DNA of 64,000 bases from Lepidodermella squamata (lineage: Eukaryota; Animalia; Gastrotricha): positions 1,426,001 through 1,490,000 of the forward strand of contig JBLDXI010000055.1 of NCBI GenBank assembly GCA_047495785.1, written 5' to 3'. This document shows, one piece after another, positions 6,480 to 56,440 of this stretch. Numbering within the stretch: the stretch's first letter is position 1; each line of letters begins with the position of its first letter. The notes below the pieces were generated by a model. That model saw nothing but the letters and a program-made list of their open reading frames with translations. It had not been told where the DNA came from and did no database searches. A program made the translations under genes and the position numbers.

Positions 6480-7361
6480 ATGGATACGTTCCAGTCCAGT
6501 AAATCCTTGTCATTAAGGTTTCTCGTTTGATTTCAAGAATTTGTTGTCCTAATCATTGGTTATTCACGCAGAACCGAGTCGCCGCCGGCTTATGATAGCT
6601 CGAGTTTTCATGATTCAACGAAAGCTGTCGATCTCACGTCACCGGTTTCTCCCGGGTACCCGGCTAGTTACCTGTCAGTTAACACCAGCAGGGCCCAATA
6701 TTTATTTCACGCTGCGACGTGGAATCCTTTCGATTCCTCATTCAACGGCCGGTCAACCGTGTTAATGCGGCATCCTTACTCAAACAACATCTTCATAGCA
6801 CCGCCTCTTTTCAATAGCCACAGCGGTCTTAGCCTACCGAGCATTGCATCACTGATAGCAAATCGGCCTCCAAGCGCAATATCACCATCGATGATGTATG
6901 AAACAGACGTAGTCAACAGGGCGAACGAGAGGAGGGATCAAAATTTCGTCGTCGTGGAACAGCCGTCGCCTCACACATCCATCGGGCAATCTTTGCATGG
7001 AATTCGATCAGTGGCACTAGGGGCGTCATTGGTATCCCTCATCTTTGGCCCAATATGCCTATCGATTCCAGCTATTTTGTGCGCCTATCGTCGACCACCA
7101 GCGGCTAAGTACTCTACGTACCGAGCTTCTATTATTTTGTCTCTTCTTTCAATAATTTTCGGCGTCATTTGGATAACGGCATTGTCTGTCAAAACAGCGG
7201 CTGGTGTCAATTCCGAGTTGATGGCTTTTAATAACTGCAGTATGTTTGGCTTCGATAACTCAACCACTACAGTGCCGAGCAACTGTACTGAAACAACGAA
7301 TTCGAATGCCACTACAGTGCCGAGCAACTCTATTGAAACTACTACTTCGAATGCATCATAG
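6480..7361 (+). CDS. CD225/dispanin-like protein B with S/T/N-rich C-terminal tail; intron 6518-6571
   Basis: Spliced MDTFQSSKSLSLR|TESPPAYDSS stays in frame into ORF 6759-7361; SLIFGPICLSIPAILCAYRRPP plus a TM helix. Confidence 0.7.
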
Positions 7362-7384: not shown

Positions 7385-7981
7385 TCAAATCTTGTTGAAG
7401 AATTTCAGAACAATAATAACGACGGTTGCATTTGTTAGGATTGAAAGGATTGCTAATGCGATAGCTAAAATATAAGTATTTCGGCTGGCGAGAGGTGGCT
7501 TTCGGCATGCAAAGATCACTGAAGGTATGGCGCAAAAAATCGTTCCCAAGACAACGGAAATAGCAGACAGGGCTATAGCAATATCGCGGCAACGGCTGAA
7601 TTCATGTTGAAAATTATCGCAAGGATTTGTTGCTTTGACTGCCGTAGTTACAATGACATTTTCAGCAGCTAGAATTTGCGAGGTCCCAGGCGAGATGCTA
7701 ACGCCAGTTTCTGGGTGGCAGACCTCTTCACTGAAGTTTAGCTCGGCTCGAAGTGGCTGATGTACGGTCAGGCGGCGAACTGGTAGCACTAGTATTGGTT
7801 CTTCGGCACTCAGAAGGTGCGGTTCATAACGGGATTGCTGGTGATTACTGAAAATGGGGAAAATCTGGAAATACAGATCGATAAGCTCATGAAAGCTGGC
7901 TAACCTTGGATTCGTGACAATTTCTTTTGAGTCGTCGTCCTTATTGCTAATAATCACGGCTGTGTCCGATGTGTCCCCCAT
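7385..7981 (-). CDS. CD225/dispanin-like protein C; probable 57-nt intron 7848-7904
   Basis: AISVVLGTIFCAIPSVIFACRKPPLASRNTYILAIAL is clearly paralogous to A, B, D and E. Confidence 0.68.
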   Translation of the reverse strand: MGDTSDTAVIISNKDDDSKEIVTNPRLASFHELIDLYFQIFPIFSNHQQSRYEPHLLSAEEPILVLPVRRLTVHQPLRAELNFSEEVCHPETGVSISPGTSQILAAENVIVTTAVKATNPCDNFQHEFSRCRDIAIALSAISVVLGTIFCAIPSVIFACRKPPLASRNTYILAIALAILSILTNATVVIIVLKFFNKI

Positions 7982-8281
7982 GATAAAAGAGAGAAATACA
8001 GGAAAAAAAGTAAAAGCTGTAAGGTTGGGTTTATAGCTGTAATATACCTCACTTCGATAAAAACGAGTGTTCTTTATCCATGCTTTACCAAAAGACGGAA
8101 TTCTAAACATATGGTGTGCTAATAAAGTTCCATTTGCGAGATTTGAACAGCTTAGCGACCCATTTTACCAAGTTCTTCATTATTCAGACGGTGCATATGG
8201 TTTTCCTAACTTCCTGCGAATTTTCCTTACAAGGTGATCACTAACTTTAAATTTATAAATATTGAAATCCAACATTGCGCT

Positions 8282-11200
8282 TTATTCGAGAAATTCAAGA
8301 ACCAGAAGGCCTATAAAGCGCCTCCACAAAGGGTATTGATGGCCTAACATGAAAGCAATGTCGAGACAGCCATAGTCAAGTGCAATATCACGTAATGATT
8401 TACCAAAGAAGTCACGCAGGTCAGTTCTAGCGCCGAGAGCGATCAACATTTTCGCAGTTTTAGTTTTACCGTATTCAACTGCCAGCATCACCGGTGTGCA
8501 GCCGAATCTATCTGCGAGATCAAGAAGGGTTCGACCGACCGGCTGCTCGAGGAGAAGCGATATAACCTGTTTTCTACCCTTAGGAACAGCAAACATGAGT
8601 GGAGACTTGCCCTCAATATCGCAAGCATCTATCTGGGCTGCATGTTGAATAAGGCAACCAGCCGTTTCTTCACGGCCGTAAAAGCAAGCATACATAAGCG
8701 GCGTCGCCATCGTAAGATCGCACAAATCAACCTCTGCTCCATGTTCGAGCAGCAATCGAGCGATTTCAGCATTTTCAGACTCACAAAGCTCAGTGTTCTT
8801 AGCGGTAAGAAGAAGGGCGCTTTCGAACTGCGCGTTCTGCGCGTTAACTTCGCAGCCGTTTTCCAACAATAGACGTACCACTGCGACATGGCCATGGCTA
8901 GCAGCGTGCATTAAGGCGGTACAGCAGTCGAAATCTCTAGCATTGATATCAGCACCATTTTCCAACAAAATCTCAACCAAATTATCATAGCCATATCTCG
9001 CTGCATCGATGAGGGGTTTTTGACCAGAAATTCCTCTAATCTCTGTGAAGGCATCTTGCTGTAAGAGGGGCTTAGCAGCTAAACTCCCGATGCGACTCGC
9101 AAGTAGTAGACCGAAAGATATATCGCGAATATTCAATTTCGAATGAATATCAAGTTCGTTGTAGTGATTGAAATTGTAAACTTGCTTCATCAGATCTCTG
9201 GCAATTTCTGATAGGTTTGTAACGGATTCATCGCCAAATACAAGTCGAAGCAGCGGCTCGTTGATTTGGTCGCAAGGTTCAAGTATCGAAGCTTCACCAT
9301 CTTCGATTTTCGATTTGATTTCCTCCATGCACTCCAACTCATCGGCTGTTAAAACTGTCTTGGGCGATAACTCTTCAGGAAAATAGTAATCGTAGTCCCG
9401 TTTTGCAATCCACATGCAATGTTGGATCACAGTCTTATCGCGGTTCGTTTTCAAAGTCAAGTCGCATTTACCTGATTGTAGCATCCAGCTGGCTCTTATT
9501 GTCTCGCCTCGCTCCATCGCTAGCATCATCGCAGTCTGGCCATTATTATTAAACTGATTGAATATAACAGCAGGTACTTTAGGATTCGAGCATAAAGCCC
9601 TTATCACGTAATAACCGTTTGAGACAGCTTTCATTAAAACATTCTCCCCGCAATCATCCGAAACATCGATTCGGCTGAGAAATTCACGGTCGTCTAGGAA
9701 ACATTGCATCAGCTCACTGAGGCCTCCAGCTGCAGCGGCTAATAAAACATTCTCGCAACTAGGTCGACCGGTTTCAACAGACTCGAGGAGCTCCGACCAT
9801 AGCCCTGATGCTTTACAGCGTTTCAGGACAATATCTCTCAGTTTTACGGGGCTTTCCATCAAGTTGTCATCTCCAAACATCAGAGATGCCGCAATGCCCC
9901 GAGCTACTCCTACGACCCCCTCGGTCTCGCCATAATCATCACCATCTTCCAAAAGTTTCTCGAGAATTCGGGCGATAGTCGGAATAGCAATATTCACCCC
10001 CTGCTTGAGTATTAATTTTGATGCAACAAGAGCAGTCAAGGGTGAATAGTGATCATTGGGAAGGAAGAATTCGAGAATCGAGCTTCGAACGCTGATGCAA
10101 TAGCATTCATCGCTGAGAATGTAGTCGATAAAAGTTTTGAAAAGTTGCGTTTTCTGAGTTTTCACAATTTTTTCAAAGCATTCTCGCCCGTATAGCCTCA
10201 AAATCAGTGAGCGACGAATGTCTATTGTTGCAGCGTAATGCGAGAGATTGAAATATTTCCTTGCAAATGGCAGGGCCGTGGCGAAAAATAACTGATGAAT
10301 AGATACATGGCGGCCATTTGTCACTTGAACAAAATTCTTCCTCTCATAATCGTTAACGTGGCCACGTACCTCGGATAAATCGCTGTATCCCCATAGAATC
10401 GCGAGATCTTCGAATTCGACGGTGTTGCCTGGTTCGAAGAGGAGAAAGCCGTAAAATCGCAACTTGGAGAATTCCGATTCATCCCTGAAAACACCTGTCA
10501 ATAGATGCAATATTTTGCGTTCGCCGTCTGACCATTTCGAATTTGACAGATCAACTGCTTCTTCTTCAGAAATAGGGCTCAACAACGTGGCAATAGCATT
10601 ACTGTCGTTTTCTATTTTCGATTTGATGGCCATCGCAGCTAAAGGGGAGCCAGAACACATCCTCGCAAGAGTATCTGTTTTGAGCTCTGATGAAGGGTTC
10701 AAGGTTATTAAATTAAGAATATCTCGGTTTGGTAGAGGAGATATTTTCAACCTCCGGCAGCTATTTGCCAGTTTTAAATCTAGATTTCTACAGATAGCAA
10801 TCACGTGGACGTTCTTACTGAGATGCAACGCTTGGCGCATAATGCAGTCAGAGGTCAAGTTGTCAAGAACCAGTAGAATCTTCGAATTCACCGAGGAAAG
10901 ATCCGAGAGAAATCGCCGAATGTATTTTGCCGAGGAACGTTCTCTATTCAGTTCCTCTACTTTGAGACTGAAGAGTTTACCCAGGCAGGCGTAGAATGAT
11001 AACCTGGATTCAGAGTAGGATCCATGATTGAAATTTGCAGCATTGAGATAAATGACTGTCGCTATGGCACATGATTTCAAAAACTGTTCGTCGAAGACAA
11101 TGGCGTTCAGAACCGTCGAGGTTTTTCCCAAGCCAGAATCACCGTAGAAAACAAGGCACTGCTTAGTTTCACTGGAAGAGCATAACTCTCTGACTTCATC

Positions 11201-11680
11201 TTGCAACTTTGACCAATCCTCCCGCCACGGCAAATCACCGATCTTCGAAAAAGGATAATCACTTTTGATTATAGGACAATCAGCCATTAGCAATGACGAC
11301 TTCTTCATCCATGAAAACTGCCTCGCATCGCAGTATTTAATTTGAACAATGGCCCTTAGAAATAGACCTGGACGAGTGGGGAGGAAATTCTTGCCTAAGA
11401 GATAATCGAGAAGATCTTTCTCCAGACATAAAAGGAATATGAAAAAAGCGTCTTGGGATGGATTTTCAAGTATGGCATCGCATAGGACGTTGACAGACAT
11501 GCTGTTATCGGCGCAATTCTGTTTTAGTCTGTCGAGGAAATCCAAGCCGAAAACATTGATTGCAAGGTCCGTGTCCTCGCGGGTGATTTCGCGTAACATC
11601 GTGCGAGCAACATGCGCGGCGTTGAAACCGTAGGCTCGGCAAGCGATGATGCCCTCCTTAATTTCAACGTTTTCGACCAT
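8282..11680 (-). CDS. STAND/NB-ARC NTPase with CARD-like N-terminus and C-terminal ankyrin repeats (NLR/APAF1-like), intronless, 1132 aa
   Basis: Walker A GDSGLGKTS, Walker B ILLVLDNL, sensor-1-like VIAICRN, GxP motif CSGSPLAA, winged-helix LAILWG...IHQLF; multiple ankyrin repeats such as TALMHAASHGHVAVVRLLLENGCEVN; helical N-terminal ~95 aa with LCDAILENPSQDAFFIFLLCLEK. Confidence 0.85.
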   Translation of the reverse strand: MVENVEIKEGIIACRAYGFNAAHVARTMLREITREDTDLAINVFGLDFLDRLKQNCADNSMSVNVLCDAILENPSQDAFFIFLLCLEKDLLDYLLGKNFLPTRPGLFLRAIVQIKYCDARQFSWMKKSSLLMADCPIIKSDYPFSKIGDLPWREDWSKLQDEVRELCSSSETKQCLVFYGDSGLGKTSTVLNAIVFDEQFLKSCAIATVIYLNAANFNHGSYSESRLSFYACLGKLFSLKVEELNRERSSAKYIRRFLSDLSSVNSKILLVLDNLTSDCIMRQALHLSKNVHVIAICRNLDLKLANSCRRLKISPLPNRDILNLITLNPSSELKTDTLARMCSGSPLAAMAIKSKIENDSNAIATLLSPISEEEAVDLSNSKWSDGERKILHLLTGVFRDESEFSKLRFYGFLLFEPGNTVEFEDLAILWGYSDLSEVRGHVNDYERKNFVQVTNGRHVSIHQLFFATALPFARKYFNLSHYAATIDIRRSLILRLYGRECFEKIVKTQKTQLFKTFIDYILSDECYCISVRSSILEFFLPNDHYSPLTALVASKLILKQGVNIAIPTIARILEKLLEDGDDYGETEGVVGVARGIAASLMFGDDNLMESPVKLRDIVLKRCKASGLWSELLESVETGRPSCENVLLAAAAGGLSELMQCFLDDREFLSRIDVSDDCGENVLMKAVSNGYYVIRALCSNPKVPAVIFNQFNNNGQTAMMLAMERGETIRASWMLQSGKCDLTLKTNRDKTVIQHCMWIAKRDYDYYFPEELSPKTVLTADELECMEEIKSKIEDGEASILEPCDQINEPLLRLVFGDESVTNLSEIARDLMKQVYNFNHYNELDIHSKLNIRDISFGLLLASRIGSLAAKPLLQQDAFTEIRGISGQKPLIDAARYGYDNLVEILLENGADINARDFDCCTALMHAASHGHVAVVRLLLENGCEVNAQNAQFESALLLTAKNTELCESENAEIARLLLEHGAEVDLCDLTMATPLMYACFYGREETAGCLIQHAAQIDACDIEGKSPLMFAVPKGRKQVISLLLEQPVGRTLLDLADRFGCTPVMLAVEYGKTKTAKMLIALGARTDLRDFFGKSLRDIALDYGCLDIAFMLGHQYPLWRRFIGLLVLEFLE

Positions 11681-11926
11681 AGGCGATGCTGTTTTGTAGG
11701 TATGACTGTGCGTATGTGACTCAAATAAAGAGCGTGCAAAAACACGCTGCGAATTATTGGGAAATCGAATTTACGCTTTCGCATTCATGCATATATCTTG
11801 TTTTGCCCGAAAAATCGATCGTAATTTCTCCCAACCACTGGTTTTTCTCGCAACTTGCGAGCTGAATTTATTTTACACTATATAAATTCGAACCTGATCA
11901 ACTTCAACAAATTCGGTTTGGCCAAC

Positions 11927-13001
11927 TTAACTATGTGGAGAATCCTTTTGACATACAGGTCTCATCAGCTCACTGTGGTCAAACCGAGCTGTCGTGAAAA
12001 TCTGTACAGCTGACTTTCTAAAAGCTGGATTCGAAACGAAATAGACAATAAAATTTCCGAAATGTTCGACGAGGCGAAATGATACGGGAATCAGCGAAAG
12101 CTTGTACAATGCCTGATTACTAAGTGTTGATCCCCATATATAACCGGACGTTATAGGGTTGAATAGAACTGTGGGAATCTCCCCAATTAGCGCGCAGAAA
12201 ACGCCAGCTATCAAAGCTATTGTCAGCTTTCGGTCGTGGCGAGGCCGACCGGGCAATTTCTGCGGGTCAAGGTGGCAAATCATTCGAATAAGAAAACAGT
12301 TGAGTGCCAACAGCAAGGCGACTGCGCCTATATAAAACCTAAATATAAGGTGGATTTTGGATTGAAATTTCTTAATCACCAGCATGAAAGACGACTAGCC
12401 GCCCAATCGAGTAGACTTGGAACCAACGGCTCTTCCACCGCGGAACTCGGCATCCGCGTTCGTCGAAGGTCCAAGCGAAGAGGCGAGGGATGCTTAGCAG
12501 TGTAAATATTAGGCAGATCCCGATCGCGACAATTACGGCAATTTTGCGGGCAGCGTTTGTATCAACGAAACCTCGCAGCCTCCTGACAAACAAAACCCGG
12601 TGCATGCTCATCGCAATGACCAGTTGTGTTGACAGCGCCGTGGTGCCGTTGTAGAGTGGCCACAACAGGAAAGTATTTAGCCATCGGCCCCGCTCAGTCG
12701 CCGAATATTCAACCACGGAGAAAAATAGTACGCCTTGTGACGACATGAGTAAAAGCTGAACGAACGCAAGGGCTGATAGGTAGATGTAAGTTGGCGATTT
12801 TAAGGTTGGCGACTTCATCGACTGATCGAACAGCAGCACGACAAAGGTGAGTAAATGCAAAAAGGTGCCGATAGTGCAAAGAAAAGGGATAACACCACCG
12901 TAATACAGTTTTTCTTCACTTGAAAGTCCTCTGGCAAACACTTCGATGCAAGGTGGCCCAGTTGATGACGATACATTGGCTAGCGGCTGCGACATTGCCA
13001 T
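11927..13001 (-). CDS. Rhodopsin-like (class A) GPCR, peptide-receptor-like orphan; 2 exons, intron approx. 12330-12380
   Basis: Seven hydrophobic segments; SPTYIYLSALA (TM2), MSMHR at the DRY position, LSIPRLF (TM4), GEIP (TM6), NFIVYFVSNPAFRK (TM7/helix 8); splice FHAG|AVALL joins the two ORFs. Confidence 0.85.
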
Positions 13002-22104: not shown

Positions 22105-23683
22105 TCATAATCTCGTCTCAGGAGGTCTAGCCTGCAAATGAGAGGGCTTCTCTGGAAGAGGAGGAGGTATTAAGCCATAAGTTGGGGTTTGATGAACAGT
22201 CTGTTGAGGATGTGATGAATTGTCTTGAAAGTGAGGATGCATATTGAGGTTCTGAGTTGGCGCGACCGGTTGATAGGACTGTTGCCGTTGTTGTTGCTGA
22301 TGACGATGATTAGCTGCCGCCGCATTCTCAGCATCAGCATCAACTTTGTTAGGGTTATCCTCAGCTTCATCCGCCTCTGTTAATACTGCAGTGTCTTTCG
22401 CGAAAACTGCGTTAAAATAGTTGGGTGGCTGATACATAGGTTGAGCCTGAACTTGGCCGAAATCTTGAGGTAACGGCGGTGGAGACGCAAAACGCACGCT
22501 CTGACTCGATTGTGGACCCGACCCAGTCCATTGGTGAGGAGGCGCCCCAGAGTTGGGCTGTTGCTGAACAGCGACCATCTCGCCGCGGAAAGGTATCGTG
22601 CCCATCACAACAGGCAAATGCACTGCAAGATCCAGCGCCCACGGAATATCGAGCCCAACCTCAAGTTCATACGACAGTGTGATGTTCTGGCAGTTGACGG
22701 AAGGTAGCGCATCGTTGGGTAATCGGAACGCGATTCCATTCCAAACCGTGCATCCACCTTGACCTATCATTTCGCATGCGCCATCATCGCAAACCGGTTG
22801 CAGCTTCCATTCGTCGTCACTGTCACGCTCGTGAGTTTCGCCGTCACGCTCAGCCCGATACACTCGTTTTTGGTTGAGTTTAACATACGGTCTAACTTCC
22901 TTGTTCGAGTCGTTGCGAAATTTTGCGGTTATAATCACGGTTTCGTCTAAATATTCAATATAAATTTTCCACGACCTTTTGCTATAAATGTTCCCTACTT
23001 GGGCAATAAGCTGCTCTATCACTTTTGGCCTCAATGGAGAGAGGCCCCGATGCACAGCAACAACAGCAAGTTGTTTTCGTATCACTCCCAGCGACGGGGA
23101 ATCGATATTGAGGCAAGTTTGTATCGATGATTTGCAGAACTTTGATATCTTCGATAGCTTTTGGGGCGTACAGTTGCTGAAACCAGGTACCCTCCGGCAC
23201 TTCGGCTTCGAACCGATACCTTACGTAGCCGTAGACTCCTTCCATTGAAGTTGGCAACCTGAATAACACCATTTACCCATGTTCATTAACATGCTTCATC
23301 GTAATTACGAGTTTGGTAATTGAAAGGAAAACGGGAGCTGGTGAAATCCGGCTGGCAGATAACCTGTGTTAAATTATAAGTTATATTCAGTATTTTTTGT
23401 TAATTGATATCATACCATATTTTCCGACAAAACTTTCTTCGAATCGAAAAAAGTTGACATGTGATTTGTAGGTCACGAGATACGTCACGCGGGTCCCAGC
23501 AATATGGCTTCGGCGCTGCTCTTTCCATGTTGCATGGGCGCTGCCATGAAACGATAGTTGAATGCCCGGTACGTCATGGTTGTCGTCGATAATTTCCACC
23601 TCGACCGCTCCGCTCACCGATTCGCCGGCGTAATACACTGTTCGGTTGCTTGCTAAACGTATTCCGACGTGCTTTAAGCCCAT
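22105..23683 (-). CDS. Alpha-arrestin 5; P/Q-rich tail with PPNY
   Basis: YYAGESVSGAV, LPTSMEGVYGYVRY, CCCCCASGP, VGLDIPWALDLAVHLPVVMGTIP; closest paralogue of arrestin 4. Confidence 0.92.
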
Positions 23684-33600: not shown

Positions 33601-35616
33601 GACGCCCGCCGGTTGCCTGCTCACCTCCATTGTAGACCAACGTGTCGCCATCGAAGTGCAACCGGGCACCGTGCGCATTCAGACGCGACTCACACTGCGG
33701 CTACAACCGGTCGAGTCGTCACTGCTCGCCGAGTTCAGGAGTCACTTATCGCCTGAAGATGGTGAGTGGCTATCTGGCACCAGCCATTTCGTCTTCCTGT
33801 CGATGCTGAACCCCAGCGTAAAGCATCCACTGCTGCTTCACATTCCTGCACCGTCATCGCTGCTTTCTAAACAAAAGCAACTGCCTATTAAAAAGCCTGA
33901 AGCCCCTAAAGAAGAGGAACCAGCGTTGCCTCCACCGCCAATGACTCGCGAACAGAAGCAAGCGGCGGCTAAAAAGCAAGTCGTCAGCTTACAAGAAGCT
34001 ATTGATGCTGCATTGGCGGCAGAAAGAGCGGCGGAGAGGGAAAAGGATGGGCCAGTTGAAGAAGACTACATGAACAAGCCATTGACGGGCATTTTAGGCA
34101 AAGGTAATTTTCAATCAAAAATGAAAGAGGAAATGAAAGTTATTAAATTTATAATTTCCAACATATCCTTATTTTATTCTTTTCTTCAGAAAAAGAAGAA
34201 GAAATAATACTGGTTGCCTGGGATCCTGACTTGGGTCCGGTTATTGTCGAAGACTGTCAAATCACTGAAGGCAAGAAGGACAACCTCATTGTAACCGTGA
34301 AGTCGGCTTATTCCAAGTAATATTCTTGCTTTCCCCGCGTCTCTTCATTAACAACAAATTTCCTTTTATCACAGGCTCATCTTATTGCGAGTGGTTAAAA
34401 CGAGCAATTTTCATTCTAACGCCGTTATCAAAACTATTCTAAAATTGGAAGAGTATATAAACAAGCGTCAAGTCGTATTCCTGCTCCGGCAACGCCCGGC
34501 ATCCCCGCAAGAATGTGTGTTTTGCGTCACGCCGACGAACCGGCTCGAGCGCGTCGTTCGGCTGTTCAACGAAGACGGTTTCACGTCGAACAACAACGCC
34601 AGCCAGCGCGAGTTGATTGTGAGCGAAGGCCAACCTTTGGAGATATGCATTTCAGGGAATCTTCAAACACGGGCTGGCATTCTTCCGACAAAGTTCTGCT
34701 TCAATTCGCAATTTAAAAATCAACTCCGGTTCGAAGTTTATCCGCTAGATAAATTCGCTCAGAAAAGTTTCGAGCAGTTTCTTGGCAGCGTAGAAGTTTA
34801 CACGACAATGATAGTCGAGCACAAAATCCAAGACAAAGAAACGCATAGAATACGCGTTGAGAAGGCGGTTGAGCGTGTGAAAATTGCCGACCTTGTCGTC
34901 AAAATCCCGAAATCGGACGATGACATTGCGCTGGACGCGTTCGAAATGCGTCGAGAAGAAATCGCGATTCGGACAGAAGACATTATCGATGAGAAACTGC
35001 TGCGCCAGATCGCCGACGAAGTCGGATCTGAGTGGCGTTCGCTTGCGAAGCACCTCGGTCTTCGACGCTCGCGGATTAATGCAATATTCGAGATGCACGA
35101 GTCGAAGGGCCCGGAAACGTGTTGCTTCGAAGCCATGTTGACGTGGTTCAAACAGACGGCAAAAAGCGTCAACAAGGCCGAGGCGTTGACGCGTGCTCTC
35201 AGCGTCATCGGTCGTCCTGATCTGTCTGAAAATTTGGGCGATATGTACAAGGACTTCAAGCGCGAAAAGGCGGACAAAACAGCCGATGAGAAGATGAAGA
35301 TCGCATTTGTGCGAATTTCCCAGGACGAGCAGATCTTACGCTCGTGGCAGCACCTCGCGAAGGCTCTTCAAGTCAACGAAAGTGCTGCCGAATCTATAAA
35401 GAAACTCAACCTTTCAACTAGGGAAAAATGTATGCACATGCTGAGCGAATGGCGATCTCAACCCGGAAGCACTCTTCAGGTGTTGCAGCAACGGCTCAAA
35501 CAGGGCGGGTTTACAAATGCCTCAAGTAAGTTTTGTACTATGCTCTTTCGTGATTCTTCTAATAAAAACTCGGGTTTTCAGGACTGGTACGTCGCATCGA
35601 CGCGGAAGGTCTTTAA
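30613..35616 (+). CDS. DTHD1: Death-domain-containing protein 1-like (coiled coil, ZU5/UPA-like region, two death domains); multi-exon
   Basis: ELLSHVIRL, PLSILIPH, YREPVIK, LLTSIVDQRV (ZU5-like); LRQIADEVGSEWRSLAKHLGL..LTW..IGRPDLSENL and a second WQHLAKALQV..MLSEWR domain; the junctions checked (exon 1/2, 34.1-34.4 kb, terminal exon) are GT-AG and in frame. Confidence 0.75.
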
Positions 35617-36162
35617 ATCGTCACAAATCGTTGTGATCATAAGATACTGTTTTTTATTGAGAAACAATTACAGCTTTAGCAAAATTAACCAATATTGCAA
35701 AATTTGTTATATTTTCATGTTCGATTATGATATTTATTATCGATTGGCAAGATGACCAAGTTTGGCCACGAATGACCTGCAACACTAGAGCGCTTATCAA
35801 ATATTTAATTCTTTTTACTAGCGATGAAGTGGTCTCGTTCGAACAAATTGTTCCTCTATTCAAAGCTGGCGGCTTTTAGTGATCATAAAGCTGAGGAGAT
35901 TCTCATAGATTTTATACGCACCTTCCGATTATTTTCTCTCATGACGAAACAAAATAAAACGTGCAAATGCATCAAAAAAACTTCGGTAATTTGAGCAACG
36001 TTTGATCAGCACAATGAAAGATGAAGAGGGCAACAAGAGAGTACAAACGGAAAGATAGATTCGTAAATATAAGCTGGTGTTGACAGCCATAGATTCTGCA
36101 TTTTTCGATGTACCGGTGAATGTTACAACAGGAGATTGCCACGAGGTTGCGCTGACCTTGCA

Positions 36163-44539: not shown

Positions 44540-46778
44540 ATGGCTGTTCGTTTTTTGTCGTCGTGTTTCCGCTCGCGGTTGTTAGCAGCATCGCGCCTTC
44601 GCCGTGCGCTCTTCATCGCCGTGCTATTCACCCTAGTCACATTCGCTATTTATTTCTCATTGACAAATAAATTCGACGTGAACCAGCTGAGCAAGTCGAG
44701 CCTTGGGCTAGCCAACTCGCCGTCTGATGGCGAAAATAGCAACGCAATTGTTGTCAATATCGATAACAGTAATAGAAAGCAATGGGTTCTATCAGACGCT
44801 GTTGGGACATTTCGCCAGGTCGCAGCTCGATTCGACGATAGCGTGAAACGAGAGATGCATATATTTTACTACGCGTGGTGGGGTAATACAACGTTCGACG
44901 ACGAGTGGATCCACTGGAATCACCCGTATCTACCGCAGCCGTCGAATAACGAAGACGCGGCGAAGCCACCGATGCGTTACCACGAGCCGCCGGACGACAT
45001 TGGCGCTAATTTCTACCCACTCCTCGGCGCTTATTCGTCGCAAGACTCGCGGCTAATGGCGAAACACATGGAGTGGATGAAGCTGAGTGGCGCTGATGTG
45101 GTAGTGCTGAGCTGGTACCCGTCGGGCATGGCCGACGATAACGGCAAACCCGTTGACCCCCTGGTACCTGTCCTACTGGAAAGTGCGGATCACTACGGTT
45201 TAAAAGTTGCATTTCACATTGAGCCATTCAAACATCGCGATGCTGACTCCATGCACCGAGCTATAGTTTATTTGATATCGAAATACGGCAATCATTCGGC
45301 CATGTACAAGTACAAGAAAACGGCTGAAGCCACGCCGCTGCCTTTAATTTACGTCTACGATTCTTACCTTGTTCCTAACGCCGAGTGGGATGCGCTGTTG
45401 ATGCCGTCAGGCCAGGGTGGCGATGCGTACCTGAGCATTCGCAACACGAAATACGATGCTCATATTATAGGTAAATTTCGATTTTCGGGTTTGTACTGGG
45501 TCATCTTTGTACCGGAACCAAATTTTAGAATTTTCTATTAGCCTGAAATCACATTTCGGACATTTCTTGCGGGTCAAGATTGACCACAATAATTCAAAAA
45601 ATTGACCATTAAATTCAACATAACATTCTTTCATCAATTTAGAAGGGTGTGCGCACCTTAAATTTAGGGTTCCAGCACTAATTTTGAGACTCTAGCACTA
45701 GATTTCCACTAAATAAGGTTTTTCGAGTTTCATGTCTTCACTAGAATCTAAACTTTTGTGCTATCATGCCTAACCATTAGATCTTCATATTACGCGTAGA
45801 TTGCGCTATAAGCGGTCAGTTTACGAGTTATACTTCAGCCTGCAGAGTCGATATCGATTACAAGTATCGATTTTACAAATCAGTGATTTTTCCGATATCA
45901 GCCGTTTTGGAACCCAACAGCGATAATTTTTCTACGTAGCTTAAGGCGCCAGGTAGCTAAAATAAAAAATCGTAGGATCTGGGAGGGCATCAGTATCGAT
46001 CAAAAACGAAAACACCGAAATCGCAGAGAAAATGTTAAGAATACAAGAATTTCAAGATTTTTAGTAGGGCAAATATTTGAACCCAATTTAGAACTAATTA
46101 ATGCTTCCCCTAAAATTCGTAGAATTATTCAAAAAATGACTCTTGGCATATTTCGACTTCAGTTCCGCAAAACCCAAATTTGATTGCGCTACAGCAAATT
46201 AGGTTCCGCCAGAAGAATTATAATTATTATCCTTAATAGGATTGTGCCTAACCGCCGGCGACCTTCCGAGGCTGAAATCGAACGGATTCGATGGTGCTTA
46301 TACTTATTTTGCTGCGAATGGCATGACAGAATGCTCAACTCAGGCAAACTGGGGCCGGTTAGCTGAAAGAGCCGCCGAGCTGGGTTTGATATTCATTCCC
46401 AGTTCTGGGCCTGGCTACGACGATTTGGCTGTCCGCGAGTGGAACAAAGTGACGACGCGAGGCCGTGGCGAACACGGCGATACGCTGTCAACCTCCTTAA
46501 AAGCTGCTATCAAGGCGGTAATGCCACATGCGAATTCGCACAACAACCAGGCGATCATCAGTTTGACGTCGTTCAACGAGTGGCACGAAGGCACGCAAAT
46601 CGAACCAGCGCGGCCGTTTGCCACCGCCTCTCGCGAGTACCAAAACTACCTGCCGCATGATCCGTTTTTCTACTTGAAACTGACGCGTGAAATTATTGAG
46701 AACACGTGGAAACATAACGGCGCCGATCAGCGCCGCAAAGCGCCTCTTTCAGCTCGCCACCAGGCGGCACCTTATTGA
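44540..46778 (+). CDS. MANEA: Glycoprotein endo-alpha-1,2-mannosidase (GH99); intron 45471-46239
   Basis: Type II anchor, HIFYYAWWGN, WIHWNH, DIGANFYPLLGAYSS, AFHIEP, GFDGAYTYFA, ITSFNEWHEG-type catalytic motif (SLTSFNEWHEGTQIEP). Confidence 0.95.
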
Positions 46779-50034: not shown

Positions 50035-51188
50035 TTAGTCATTGAGGGCGTCGATACGTTTGCAGTTGGCGCGGCACGTCCGCTTGTCGACGGTGGACGC
50101 GCGGCACTTGGCGCACATGTCCTTGCGGATGAGGCTGCGCACCCAGCCGACGAATTCGCGCACGTCCGTGTAGATACCGGGCATTTTCGGCTGCGCGCAG
50201 TCGAAGCCAAACGACACGAGCCCAGCCAGCGTCCAACCGCGCGAGCCCTTGCAAATCAACGGACCACCGGAGTCGTACTGGCAAGCGTCCTTGCCGCCGT
50301 TCTCATGGCCGGCGCAGATCATTTCGTGCGAGATGCGCAGTTGCATGTCGAACTCGCGGTTCACCTCGGCGAACAGCTCCTTGTAGCTTTCTTCGCAGTT
50401 CTTCTTATCGTAAATTGGAACATCGACGTGGTGAGGCACGATGGCAATAGACGATGCGTTCGACTGCAAGTGGCCCCAGCCGGCTGCCAAGCAATGCGAG
50501 TCTTTCGTCCAGCCGTCCGTCTTCGGGTCGGGTAGACAGATGTGGCGGACGTGTTTGCCGAGCTTGGCCGGGCGTTTCAACTTGATGAAAGCAATGTCGT
50601 TTTGGAACTCTCCGAATCGACGGCCCTTGTAGCGGATGATCGATTTCACTTCAATGTCATCCTCGCTGTCAGTGTTCTCCGCCATGTTGTGCTCACCGAC
50701 GCGGACCATCCAATAGTCGGGATCTTCCGTCAGCTCGGCCTTCCAGAATTTTTCGAAGCAGTGCGCCGCTGACAGAACGTAATAACGGTGGATGAGAACA
50801 CCACCGCACAAATGCTCGAAGGTTCCGTTCAGCTTGAGTCGCATGCTGACGAGGAACGGCCATTCGCCGCGGTTCAGCTCGAGACCGCCAACGATACGCT
50901 TCGATCGCTGCTGTCCTCCCATTTGGTGCAACTGGCCGCTAAGCATCAGCAACTTGTCGTAGGTTGAGATGGGTGGGTGGATGCAGCGCATTTCGGACGC
51001 TGGCGAGGACGCGTCGCTCAGCTGGTCGTCGAGTTCGGAAGTGAAATCGCGCTCATCGATTCTTAGCAGTTTATTCGCTTCACAAACCTGTTCAAGTTCA
51101 AAATTTGAAAGAGAGTCTTTAACTTTTCCAGAAAGCTTACCGTTACAGACAACGCGACAATGACGAAAGATATACTTGCTATCGTCAT
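50035..51188 (-). CDS. Secreted trypsin-like (S1A) serine protease 2 with Cys-rich C-terminal tail; 2 exons
   Basis: MTIASISFVIVALSVT|VCEA signal, RSKR|IVGG, LSAAHC, NDIAFIKL, GKDACQYDSGGP. Confidence 0.93.
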
Positions 51189-53895: not shown

Positions 53896-56440
53896 TCAGT
53901 CCACCGACTCGATGGCTTCCGCTCCAGGTGGAGCGACATCCCCTGACGATGAATCAGCAGCAACTTTTTTCTGCAACAGCGAATCGCGCTCGAATATCAA
54001 CTGGTCGTAGCGCTCTTGCAGCTTCCGTTCACGCTGCTCCTGCCGCTCGACCTCCTCGCGTAATGCACCGACCCGGCGCGGGATTGCCGCGACTTCGTGC
54101 TGGCGCAGAAGTCGGAATGTAGACAACTCAATGCGAGCCTGTTCCAGCTGGTCATGAACCTCGCTCAACTGCTTCACCTCGCTTTGATATTTGGTTTGGT
54201 AGCCGCCATGTAACACTCGCAGCTTTTTCTCCAACTTACCGGCGCGCTTCGCCTCTTCAGACATGTGTTGCCGGTGGGTATCGAGACGGCGTTCAAACGA
54301 CTCGATTCTCTCTTTTTTCGACGCCATATTCATGCGAGTGAAATGCTGCTGGGAAGGCACGTATAACACCTGGGCGTAGCATTCCTCCCACACGCGGGAA
54401 TACGCGTCTAAACCCAAATCACCATGACCAACCATAGCTTTGACATTAGCCATTTCACGCTGCAGAATCAGCTTCGCTTGCTCAAGGTCTTCCTGTTGAA
54501 CAGGCTGGAAAGGGTGGGAGCGAAGAAATTCCGAGTGGCGGGCTGTTTCAGACGCGGTCGATTTTCCGGCGCCCCTCGGCAACGGCGCCGGGTTGTTTAC
54601 CGCATCGTAGTGGAGCATGACCAGCATCTCTGCCTTAATCAACTCTTCGGCTCGCTGCATTTCCGACAAATTTTGCAGCTGCTCCGGTGGGCGCATGATA
54701 TTGTCGTTGACGGTGACAGGGCGCGGCAGACCGCGCTGAACAGCCTGAGATTGGCGCCGAAATTCAGCCTGGCGAGCCGCCTCTTCCTCGTCCCTGATTT
54801 GCTTCTCGACCTCCGACATATCCTCCTCTCGAGTCGAGTCCGTCACCTCCATTTCTTCGGATTCTTTCGCGTCTTCGTCATCGTCAGGTAGCACGATTTC
54901 GAAGTCGTTGCGCGGCGTTGGGAGGGAACGAAGTTTTTCCCGCAAATCTTCGGCTTGTTGCCGCCGTTGGCCACGCTCTGAACCAGACGGCGTCGGAGCT
55001 TCAAATCCGTCGGATGAATTGATGTTCAAGCGATCTCGAAGAGGTGTTTTACCCGCTGCCATCAATTCAGAGCGCTGACTAGGCGTCATTCCGCCCGCAG
55101 CCGATGTGCCAGGCGCTGCCGGGGTTCGGAAAGGTAGAGCAATGACGGTATTCGGGGTCTGGACGACGGTGCGACCACCACCCGCCGGGGTCGATATTTC
55201 AGTTTCAAACAACGGTTCGTTCGAACCGCCTTTCAGTGGCGTTTCAGCAGTAGACATTATGAAAAGATTATGAGCTTCTTTGAGCAAGGTGTCTTCAACA
55301 GCAGGCGTCCGAGCGGGAGGTAACATCGCTCCACCACCAAGGCCAGTAATAGCCGGAGTAACAGTATAATCTCCGATCAACTCGTGAGTGGCCGAGTCCG
55401 GAATGCCGCTGGCTTCGGCTTCACGTCTCGCAGCCTCGGAGGCCATTCCGATTTTCACAACTTGTTCCAGCTCCTCGTCGGTGATTTGAGGGGCAGGTAG
55501 CACCAATTTCGACCTCTTCTTCGCCGGCTCAGAGCTAGTACCAGTTTGACTAAAAATAACAGCCGGCATGTCGCTTTCTTTGCGCTTCGCCAGCTTCTCT
55601 GAATCTTTTGCCCGATCCCGCTTTTCGCGTTCTTTTGCGTTCAGGTTCTCCATCTTGTCGGTATTCAAAGTCTTCCAGTTGACATCAAGCGCTTTGGCTG
55701 TTTCTTCCGAGGTATCATAGAAACCTGCAGGAACACGCTTTTCGAAGGGAATCTCCTCATTGTAATCGATGCCCCACTTCTGGCGACGACGCTTTCGCAT
55801 TAAAATTCCAGCCGCGCGCAATTCTCGTCGCTTTTGAAGCGAAGCCAGCCGGCGGGCTTCGTCCATTTGTCGTTCACGGGCCTTTCGCTTCGCTTTTTTA
55901 CCCTGAGTATTAGCAAGACGAGCACGAGCTTCAGCAAGCATTTCCAACTCATCCTCGTCCATGTCAACGGGATCCGGCCGAGCAGGTTTTGTTTCAGGAT
56001 TAGGATCTATTTCGCCAGGACGAAGACGGCGAGGATCATCCTGGCCAAGATCGCTGTCTTTCTGCTGAGCCCGATCTAGAAGGTACTCGTAGTGCTCAAT
56101 GCATTGGGCAGCAGTTCGCCCAACTAGAGGAGCTATGGTACGCCATTGCGTTGGAAAGAGGCGTGCAAGGTGCAAAAGCTTCTCCTCTTCTTCGCGAGAC
56201 CACTCAGTCTTCTTGACTGAGGGATCTAACCATTCGTACCAGCGGGATTTGCATTGTTTTGCTGACTTTCGATGGAGCAGTGAAGCAATTCGAGCCCATT
56301 GGTTTTTGCCATATTTCATGACGGCTGCTTTGAGGATTTCATCCTGAATAAGAATAAATTGAGGAGACATATAAACAGAGCGAAGAATAACTCACCTCAG
56401 TGTTGCGCCAAATACCGCCCTTTATCAAAAGTCGAGGCAT
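53896..56440 (-). CDS. CDC5L: Pre-mRNA splicing factor CDC5L/Cef1; intron 56344-56395
   Basis: MPRLLIKGGIWRNTE|DEILKAAVMKYGKNQWARIASLLHRKSAKQCKSRWYEWLDPS tandem Myb repeats, GEIDPNPETKPARPDP, C-terminal coiled coil. Confidence 0.98.

Follow-up and report, generated by a model that had tools for sequence, protein, structure and literature searches.

A probable three-part switch receptor with a predicted CARD-like head, an Apaf-1-type NB-ARC core and an ankyrin sensor in the gastrotrich Lepidodermella squamata

What kind of protein is encoded by a long, uninterrupted reading frame on contig JBLDXI010000055.1 of the gastrotrich Lepidodermella squamata (GenBank assembly GCA_047495785.1), and might it serve as the scaffold of an apoptosome? 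The stretch of DNA that was analysed, referred to here as the window, comprises 64,000 nucleotides (contig positions 1,426,001 to 1,490,000 of the forward strand), and the frame occupies positions 8282 to 11680 of the window on the minus strand. An initial annotation made from the letters alone had proposed an apoptosome-like immune receptor with a CARD-like N-terminus, an APAF1/CED-4-type NB-ARC core and two blocks of ankyrin repeats, formed within one lineage by domain shuffling. Our analysis points to what is probably a three-part switch receptor of the STAND class (signal transduction ATPases with numerous domains), in which a death-fold head, most similar to a CARD, precedes an NB-ARC core and a two-block ankyrin sensor. 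By analogy with related proteins, its most likely role would be innate-immune or cell-death surveillance and not that of a housekeeping apoptosome.

The intact open reading frame (ORF) and the motifs assigned to it beforehand, namely Walker A and B, GxP and the sequence IHQL, were all located where the initial annotation had implied. The layout of the gene and its product is given below, with residues of the protein as aa and with the predicted local distance difference test (pLDDT) as the measure of confidence in structural models.

8282..11680, minus strand: whole gene, one open frame of 1132 aa that ends in a stop, intron-free
11366..11680, minus strand: head module, aa 1 to ~105, all-helical, predicted death fold closest to CARD, a sequence orphan
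11234..11365, minus strand: linker, aa 106-149, with pLDDT 37-59 in the blocks covering aa 101-135 and poorly conserved in head alignments
10736..11233, minus strand: nucleotide-binding domain, aa 150-315, assigned from its motifs, the family alignment, a pLDDT of mostly 85-96 and a profile match to APAF-1
11117-11143, minus strand: Walker A, G180-DSGLGK186-T187, aa 180-187 (the nucleotides cover aa 180-188)
10859-10879, minus strand: Walker B, I268-LLVLD273-N274 (LLVLDN), aa 268-274
10787-10789, minus strand: sensor-I R298, added by the family alignment
10535..10735, minus strand: helical domain 1 (ARC1), aa 316-382, with GSPLA at aa 344-348 (10637-10651)
10241..10534, minus strand: winged-helix domain (ARC2), aa 383-480, with EDLAILWG and, at the MHD position, IHQL (aa 461-464; 10289-10300)
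9761..10240, minus strand: helical region, possibly an HD2 equivalent, aa 481-640, without a Pfam match
9446..9760, minus strand: ankyrin block 1, aa 641-745, with a weak cap (641-661) and strong repeats (676-707, 712-744), Ank_2 E 1e-12
9032..9445, minus strand: inter-block segment, aa 746-883, without a known domain; in the sister genes on contig C19 its homologous counterpart is exon 2
8321..9031, minus strand: ankyrin block 2, aa 884-1120, with six strong repeats (884-1089) and a probable C-terminal cap

The core of the receptor was identified through its relatives. It matches two paralogues, L006 (E 8e-32) and L007 (E 1e-27), and these in turn pass the Pfam NB-ARC model at 2e-12 and 1e-9, with weak matches to APAF-1-like_WHD. 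In an alignment of 30 family members the complete series of P-loop, vxWLNC, LxVLDD, sensor-I Arg, GLPLxAS, EDLAILWG and MHD-position His is present, with the two Gly and the Lys of the P-loop invariant throughout. The profile of these 30 members matched residues 131-442 of human APAF-1 at E 3.9e-30, followed by plant nucleotide-binding leucine-rich-repeat (NLR) proteins of the NRC type at ~1e-19 and by CED-4 at 3e-14; in this profile the His of IHQL (H462) aligns with that of the APAF-1 LHD motif, and GSPLA aligns with APAF-1 GSPL. Furthermore, an AlphaFold model of aa 140-640, built from the family alignment, is confident over aa 150-525 and finds as its best Foldseek matches the closed, ADP-bound form of Apaf-1 (E 6.5e-11 and 1.4e-10), followed by NRC2 in its resting state and by CED-4. 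Transitive homology, family profile and predicted fold therefore make the Apaf-1-type NB-ARC identity of the core secure at the level of the family, within which the receptor and its closest paralogues form a divergent branch.

Within the winged-helix domain the Trp and His are conserved in the family, and the model predicts a beta-hairpin followed by a helix. The helical region that follows (aa 481-640) drops to a pLDDT of 40-60 beyond ~aa 525 and is conserved only among the receptor and its C19 sisters. In Walker B the first Asp (D273) is kept and the second acidic residue is Asn (N274). Of the 30 members sampled, Asn at this second position is shared by the receptor, its four sisters, L009 and L029; it also occurs, after Glu, in L040, while L032 and L048 have Ser and the other 20 have Asp. 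No NACHT or LRR match was obtained for the receptor in Pfam (NACHT appeared only at E ~0.05 in paralogues), and its domain content places it outside the canonical animal NLRs of the NACHT-LRR type.

Both ankyrin blocks that had been noticed by eye are real. Block 2 scanned alone gave E 8.8e-38 for Ank_2 and 9.2e-38 for Ank, and the whole protein scored 154.7 bits with Ank_2 against a cut-off of 27.3. Ank_2 matches within aa 621-860 fall in block 1 (best stretch aa 647-741), and no family was found on the inter-block segment, which shares the pattern '...LEPCD..N..LL...' with the C19 sister genes. A hidden Markov model (HMM) built iteratively from the protein's own repeats counted eight strong repeats and a weak cap in total. 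Searches of PDB sequences returned DARPins and ankyrin-1 with E-values no higher than 1e-60. The NCBIfam models for Legionella Ank effectors and MzaA matched only partially, driven by the ankyrin repeats and far below their cut-offs, and were set aside as repeat similarity. A C-terminal tail anchor was also considered and rejected, as the stretch FIGLLVLEFL spans only about 10 residues, contains a Glu and was judged by eye to be too short.

At least 50 NB-ARC/ankyrin genes make up the lineage-specific family of which the receptor is a member in this short-intron invertebrate. The genome searched (G000, 121 Mb in 151 contigs) holds at least 53 matches to aa 1-640 of the receptor and at least 47 loci above the Pfam NB-ARC cut-off, most of them in open frames of 900-1100 aa. 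Word-based protein searches with aa 1-640 of the receptor and with aa 60-480 of the most canonical paralogue both came back empty, a blank that does not prove absence. The lineage-specific origin and the domain shuffling proposed by the initial annotation both fit these data. Maximum-likelihood analysis of 30 members placed the receptor and four tandem genes on contig C19 in a clade with 100/100 support on a long stem. The C19 cluster (~2,897,000-2,943,000; loci L002-L005 and L016/L023) consists of four intact tandem sisters, which are 34-37% identical to the receptor, and of a further copy, at C19:2917182-2917653, that has several stop codons and is a clear pseudogene. Each of the four sisters is interrupted by a single short intron, at the position that corresponds to aa ~757 of the receptor, which itself has no intron: the first ORF ends in the donor CAG|GTAGGC, and the frame resumes after a pyrimidine tract and a CAG acceptor. 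By this splice-site evidence the sisters are split genes and not truncated ones. Among the C19 genes the ratio of nonsynonymous to synonymous substitution rates (dN/dS) is lowest in the NB-ARC core (0.18) and the helical region (0.19), rises to 0.25 in the head and reaches 0.32 in ankyrin block 1. Every domain tested in the sister clade is thus under purifying selection, slightly weaker in head and sensor.

Two public runs cover the receptor gene, and positions 8000-12000 were examined in both. Run X1, which is guessed to be RNA, has depth over 8268-11617, none in either flank and no skip joints. An unspliced transcript would be expected to give such a pattern, which, short of proof, suggests one. 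Run X2 is DNA-like and covers 8000-12000 evenly at ~100x. It contains a second haplotype at about half depth with 59 differences in these 4 kb, and the 39 single-nucleotide polymorphisms (SNPs) listed within the ORF comprise 24 nonsynonymous and 15 synonymous changes. Differences of this density suggest either high heterozygosity or a collapsed, very recent duplicate. An Rfam scan of the window gave no match.

The head is the part of the receptor that is hardest to assign. It is carried by six NB-ARC genes, namely the receptor gene, the four C19 sisters and one gene on contig C54, and also occurs as four complete stand-alone ORFs of 127-155 aa. A HMMER search of 1.84 billion representative proteins recovered a single relative, P0001 (146 aa, E 1.4e-18), which is of the head-only type and derives from a 1.2-kb run-assembly contig of run SRR23086389. 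Eight head homologues share, beyond the start Met, the invariant residues C14, R15, F19, A21, R26, F44, F48, C67 and L94, and because of these nine positions and the dN/dS of 0.25 in the four sister genes the head is, from its sequence, a real and constrained coding domain. The AlphaFold (AF2) model built from the eight-sequence alignment (pLDDT 70.6; predicted template modelling score, pTM, 0.60) is all-helical over aa 1-96, and the six-helix antiparallel Greek-key bundle of ~90 aa expected of a CARD was seen in this predicted model only. Compared by VIA-align with 48,161 PDB representatives, the model matched CARDs in 28 of the top 29 rows (Z 6.1-7.5; root-mean-square deviation, rmsd, 2.5-3.8 Å; 78-100 residues aligned), among them those of NLRC4, APAF-1, MDA5, RIG-I, RIP2, caspase-1, caspase-9, Dark and CED-4, with PYD, DED and DD domains below them in the list. 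On the strength of this near-exclusive death-fold content and of the position before an Apaf-1-like core, we consider it quite likely that the head adopts a death fold; for the CARD subtype in particular the model tips the assignment only somewhat in favour.

The stand-alone copies of the head are located as follows.

C9:140005-140394 (L055:6005-6394), plus strand: head-only ORF, in a tandem pair with the second C9 copy
C9 ~144415-144756 (L027): head-only ORF, in a tandem pair with the first C9 copy
C34:244970-245353 (L056:6970-7353), minus strand: head-only ORF
C48:690478-690945 (L057:6478-6945), minus strand: head-only ORF

Three of these four ORFs share the ending '...RNQC.TV*'. They are the sole visible candidate partners of the head, and their products may serve the head-bearing NB-ARC receptors as adaptors or decoys. 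To the eye, some small ORFs that lie downstream of the C48 copy resembled death folds, but Pfam gave nothing and they were dropped. A six-frame Pfam search of the genome found no CARD or DED, a search by which small domains split by introns could be missed. Caspase genes number only two or three, at C32:3773524-3774401, at C17:2345976-2346808 and, as a fragment, on C87. In the C32 caspase the prodomain is short and of low complexity, no CARD was recognisable at either caspase locus examined (C32, C17), and the head-module profile did not match the caspase loci. Death-domain loci number six in the genome. One of them lies in the window ~23 kb from the receptor gene, at 34385-35755 on the plus strand, as a 456-aa ORF with two Death-domain stretches (PF00531 E 1.7e-16). 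The genome thus presents a very small death-fold and caspase toolkit alongside at least 47 NB-ARC loci.

Sensing in Apaf-1, in plant NLRs and in other STAND proteins leads to exchange of ADP for ATP, to oligomers and to recruitment of partners by the head. If the receptor works as its family does, it would rest in a closed, ADP-bound form that the His of IHQL and the ankyrin arm keep shut. A ligand, protein or danger signal on the ankyrin surface would then open it, ADP would be exchanged for ATP and the NB-ARC cores would assemble into a ring, and the clustered heads might recruit a downstream partner by homotypic, like-with-like contacts. The Asp-Asn form of Walker B, in place of the Asp-Asp of most relatives, may slow ATP hydrolysis and so lengthen the 'on' state.

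Several observations weigh against the three-part receptor. The head model is only moderately confident, with its pLDDT of 70.6 obtained from eight sequences. Its best Z of 7.5 falls within the range for which VIA-align advises caution, since helical bundles can reach values below 8 by chance. Foldseek of the head against the PDB gave nothing significant, although the top TM-scores among its weak rows were CARDs; Pfam at E<=10 found no CARD, Death, DED or PYD on any of the eight head homologues; and the head profile matched no PDB sequence. As for the core, the receptor protein has no match to PF00931 at E<=1 and only sub-threshold ones to AAA_22, ATPase_2 and AAA_16 in Pfam, phmmer of aa 1-640 against the PDB returned nothing relevant to NB-ARC, and a core profile of the receptor and its four closest paralogues retrieved no NB-ARC protein from the PDB. 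The APAF1/CED-4-type core of the initial annotation is thus upheld by paralogues, family profile and predicted fold but is undetectable on this protein alone, and the core model is itself not fully independent evidence because canonical paralogues entered its alignment. A complex prediction of the head with a C9 head-only protein gave no answer, neither for nor against binding, and the nature of run X1 as RNA is only a guess. For the head these same results would also suit an architecture as proposed in which the N-terminus is a lineage-specific helical domain with another output, such as a different effector or regulation of the ATPase. The absence of sequence likeness to CARD, Death, DED and PYD, the model and Foldseek values given above and the ESM Atlas searches by feature and by shape, which yielded nothing usable, all speak for it. 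Against it, CARD and other death-fold chains fill the top 50 VIA-align rows of 48,161 chains almost exclusively, which would be hard to obtain by chance, the matches span the whole domain of 85-100 residues at an rmsd of ~2.5-3 Å, and the head sits at the canonical CARD position before an Apaf-1-like NB-ARC. We therefore regard an unrelated helical head as unlikely. The CARD-like N-terminal domain of the initial annotation survives as an all-helical domain with a CARD-like predicted model, while a sequence match to any death-fold family is lacking.

A further reading accepts the death fold and takes the head as an orphan branch of it, through which the six NB-ARC/ankyrin receptors would signal, via the four head-only proteins as adaptors or decoys, to an output that does not involve caspases; taken as a whole, this network seems to us rather doubtful. 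If true it would be moderately interesting, as a previously unrecognised branch of the death-fold superfamily. The output might instead be a caspase after all, with the receptor as a true apoptosome scaffold that substitutes for Apaf-1, recruits an initiator caspase and has its ankyrin repeats in place of the WD40 cytochrome-c sensor. APAF-1 is indeed the best match of the core in both sequence and fold, and the CARD-like head has matches to the CARDs of APAF-1, Dark and CED-4. A caspase-recruiting apoptosome is unsupported, however, because no Pfam CARD or DED was found in the genome, whose only caspases, two or three in number, lack a CARD prodomain: the prodomain of the C32 caspase is short and of low complexity, the C17 caspase has no recognisable CARD, and neither locus is matched by the head-module profile. 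The receptor has no WD40 tail, and more than 50 paralogues with at least four sisters are unlike a housekeeping scaffold. Such a function is thus improbable, and the apoptosome-like character claimed by the initial annotation is not supported. It would be more improbable still that the gene is a decaying or inert member of its family, with an NTPase that no longer cycles and at most a passive ankyrin scaffold. Its clade is divergent enough to escape the Pfam NB-ARC model and sits on a long stem branch, Walker B reads Asp-Asn instead of Asp-Asp, the listed SNPs of the second haplotype are more often nonsynonymous than synonymous (24 vs 15), and the C19 cluster does contain one clear pseudogene. 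On the other hand the frame runs for 3.4 kb without a stop, the P-loop Lys, Walker B Asp, sensor-I Arg, GxP and MHD-position His are all kept, purifying selection acts on every domain tested in the sister clade (dN/dS 0.18-0.32), and transcript-like coverage is confined to the ORF. We thus retain the three-part receptor with a death-fold head as the probable reading.

In comparison with known systems, the receptor is most similar to APAF-1 of human and mouse (PDB 1z6t, 3sfz, 3shf), with which it shares the order of CARD-shaped head, nucleotide-binding domain, helical domain 1, winged-helix domain, helices and repeat sensor, as well as aligned P-loop, Walker B, GxP and the His of LHD/MHD. It differs in that its sensor consists of two ankyrin blocks and not of two WD40 propellers, in that its head has no CARD sequence similarity, and in that it has an Asp-Asn Walker B and is one of more than 50 paralogues with no CARD-caspase in sight, whereas APAF-1 is single-copy. 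It is not an APAF-1 orthologue. With plant NB-ARC NLRs such as NRC2 (PDB 8rfh, 8xuq), its second-best matches, and with fungal or bacterial STAND-ankyrin proteins it shares the switch fold and the series of motifs. The profile score to plant NLRs is about 10 orders of magnitude weaker than that to APAF-1. The sensors of plant NLRs are LRRs, and the heads of plant, fungal and bacterial proteins are different (CC, TIR, HET, HeLo and others). Ankyrin tails are frequent in fungal NLRs.

Among animals, the coral Acropora has ~500 NACHT/NB-ARC loci according to a summary of Hamada et al. 2013 (PMC4083563), with heads that include CARD, DED and Death, tails that include LRR, TPR, ankyrin and WD40, and arrangements in tandem pairs and triplets. 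The coral and other cnidarian repertoires resemble the gastrotrich family in being lineage-specific and tandemly duplicated and in combining a death-fold head, a NACHT or NB-ARC and a repeat tail, ankyrin included; unlike them, the receptor has a head that is a sequence orphan, and no close relationship was detected in word searches, which came back empty; the comparison is one of repertoires. According to Zmasek et al. 2007 (PMC2246300), multiple Apaf-1 homologues with swapped heads (CARD, DD, DED, TIR) and swapped tails (WD40, TPR or none) occur in Nematostella as well as in amphioxus and sea urchin. The NB-ARC genes of placozoans number 39, and some of them carry 'death-like domains' that are difficult to detect (PMC6321704). 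The receptor family is similar to these expansions in its multiple NB-ARC paralogues and differs in its ankyrin tail, the tails there being WD40 or TPR. The prospect that such an architecture might already be catalogued in invertebrates was thus borne out in part, by coral death-fold/ankyrin proteins (PMC4083563) and by the established shuffling among invertebrate Apaf-1 homologues (PMC2246300). Since death-fold/NB-ARC/ankyrin architectures are known from corals, the receptor type as such is already catalogued in animals; specific to the present case are the orphan head family, its head-only paralogues and a degree of divergence at which routine domain scans overlook head and core alike.

The receptor is thus one well-dissected example of the large, lineage-specific NLR-like repertoires in which invertebrates recombine death-fold heads, NB-ARC cores and repeat sensors. 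It does not overturn current views and is real but fairly ordinary. As standard domain scans miss the head and core of this clade, repertoires of this kind are undercounted. The head-only genes are a directly testable candidate for a signalling partner in an animal otherwise without recognisable CARDs.

The ORFs flanking the receptor gene are membrane-protein-like. The stretch 11927-13001 on the minus strand includes a match to the Srw-type family of serpentine G-protein-coupled receptors (12372-13001, E 1.2e-5), while 7385-8110 (minus strand) and 6759-7361 (plus strand), at the 3' end of the receptor gene, have putative membrane-spanning hydrophobic stretches and no Pfam match. Other genes recognised in the window are listed below.

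53896-56370, minus strand: CDC5L/Cef1-type Myb splicing factor
50035-50991, minus strand: trypsin-like serine protease
44540-45541, plus strand: GH99 endo-mannosidase-like protein
22105-23085, minus strand: arrestin C-domain exon

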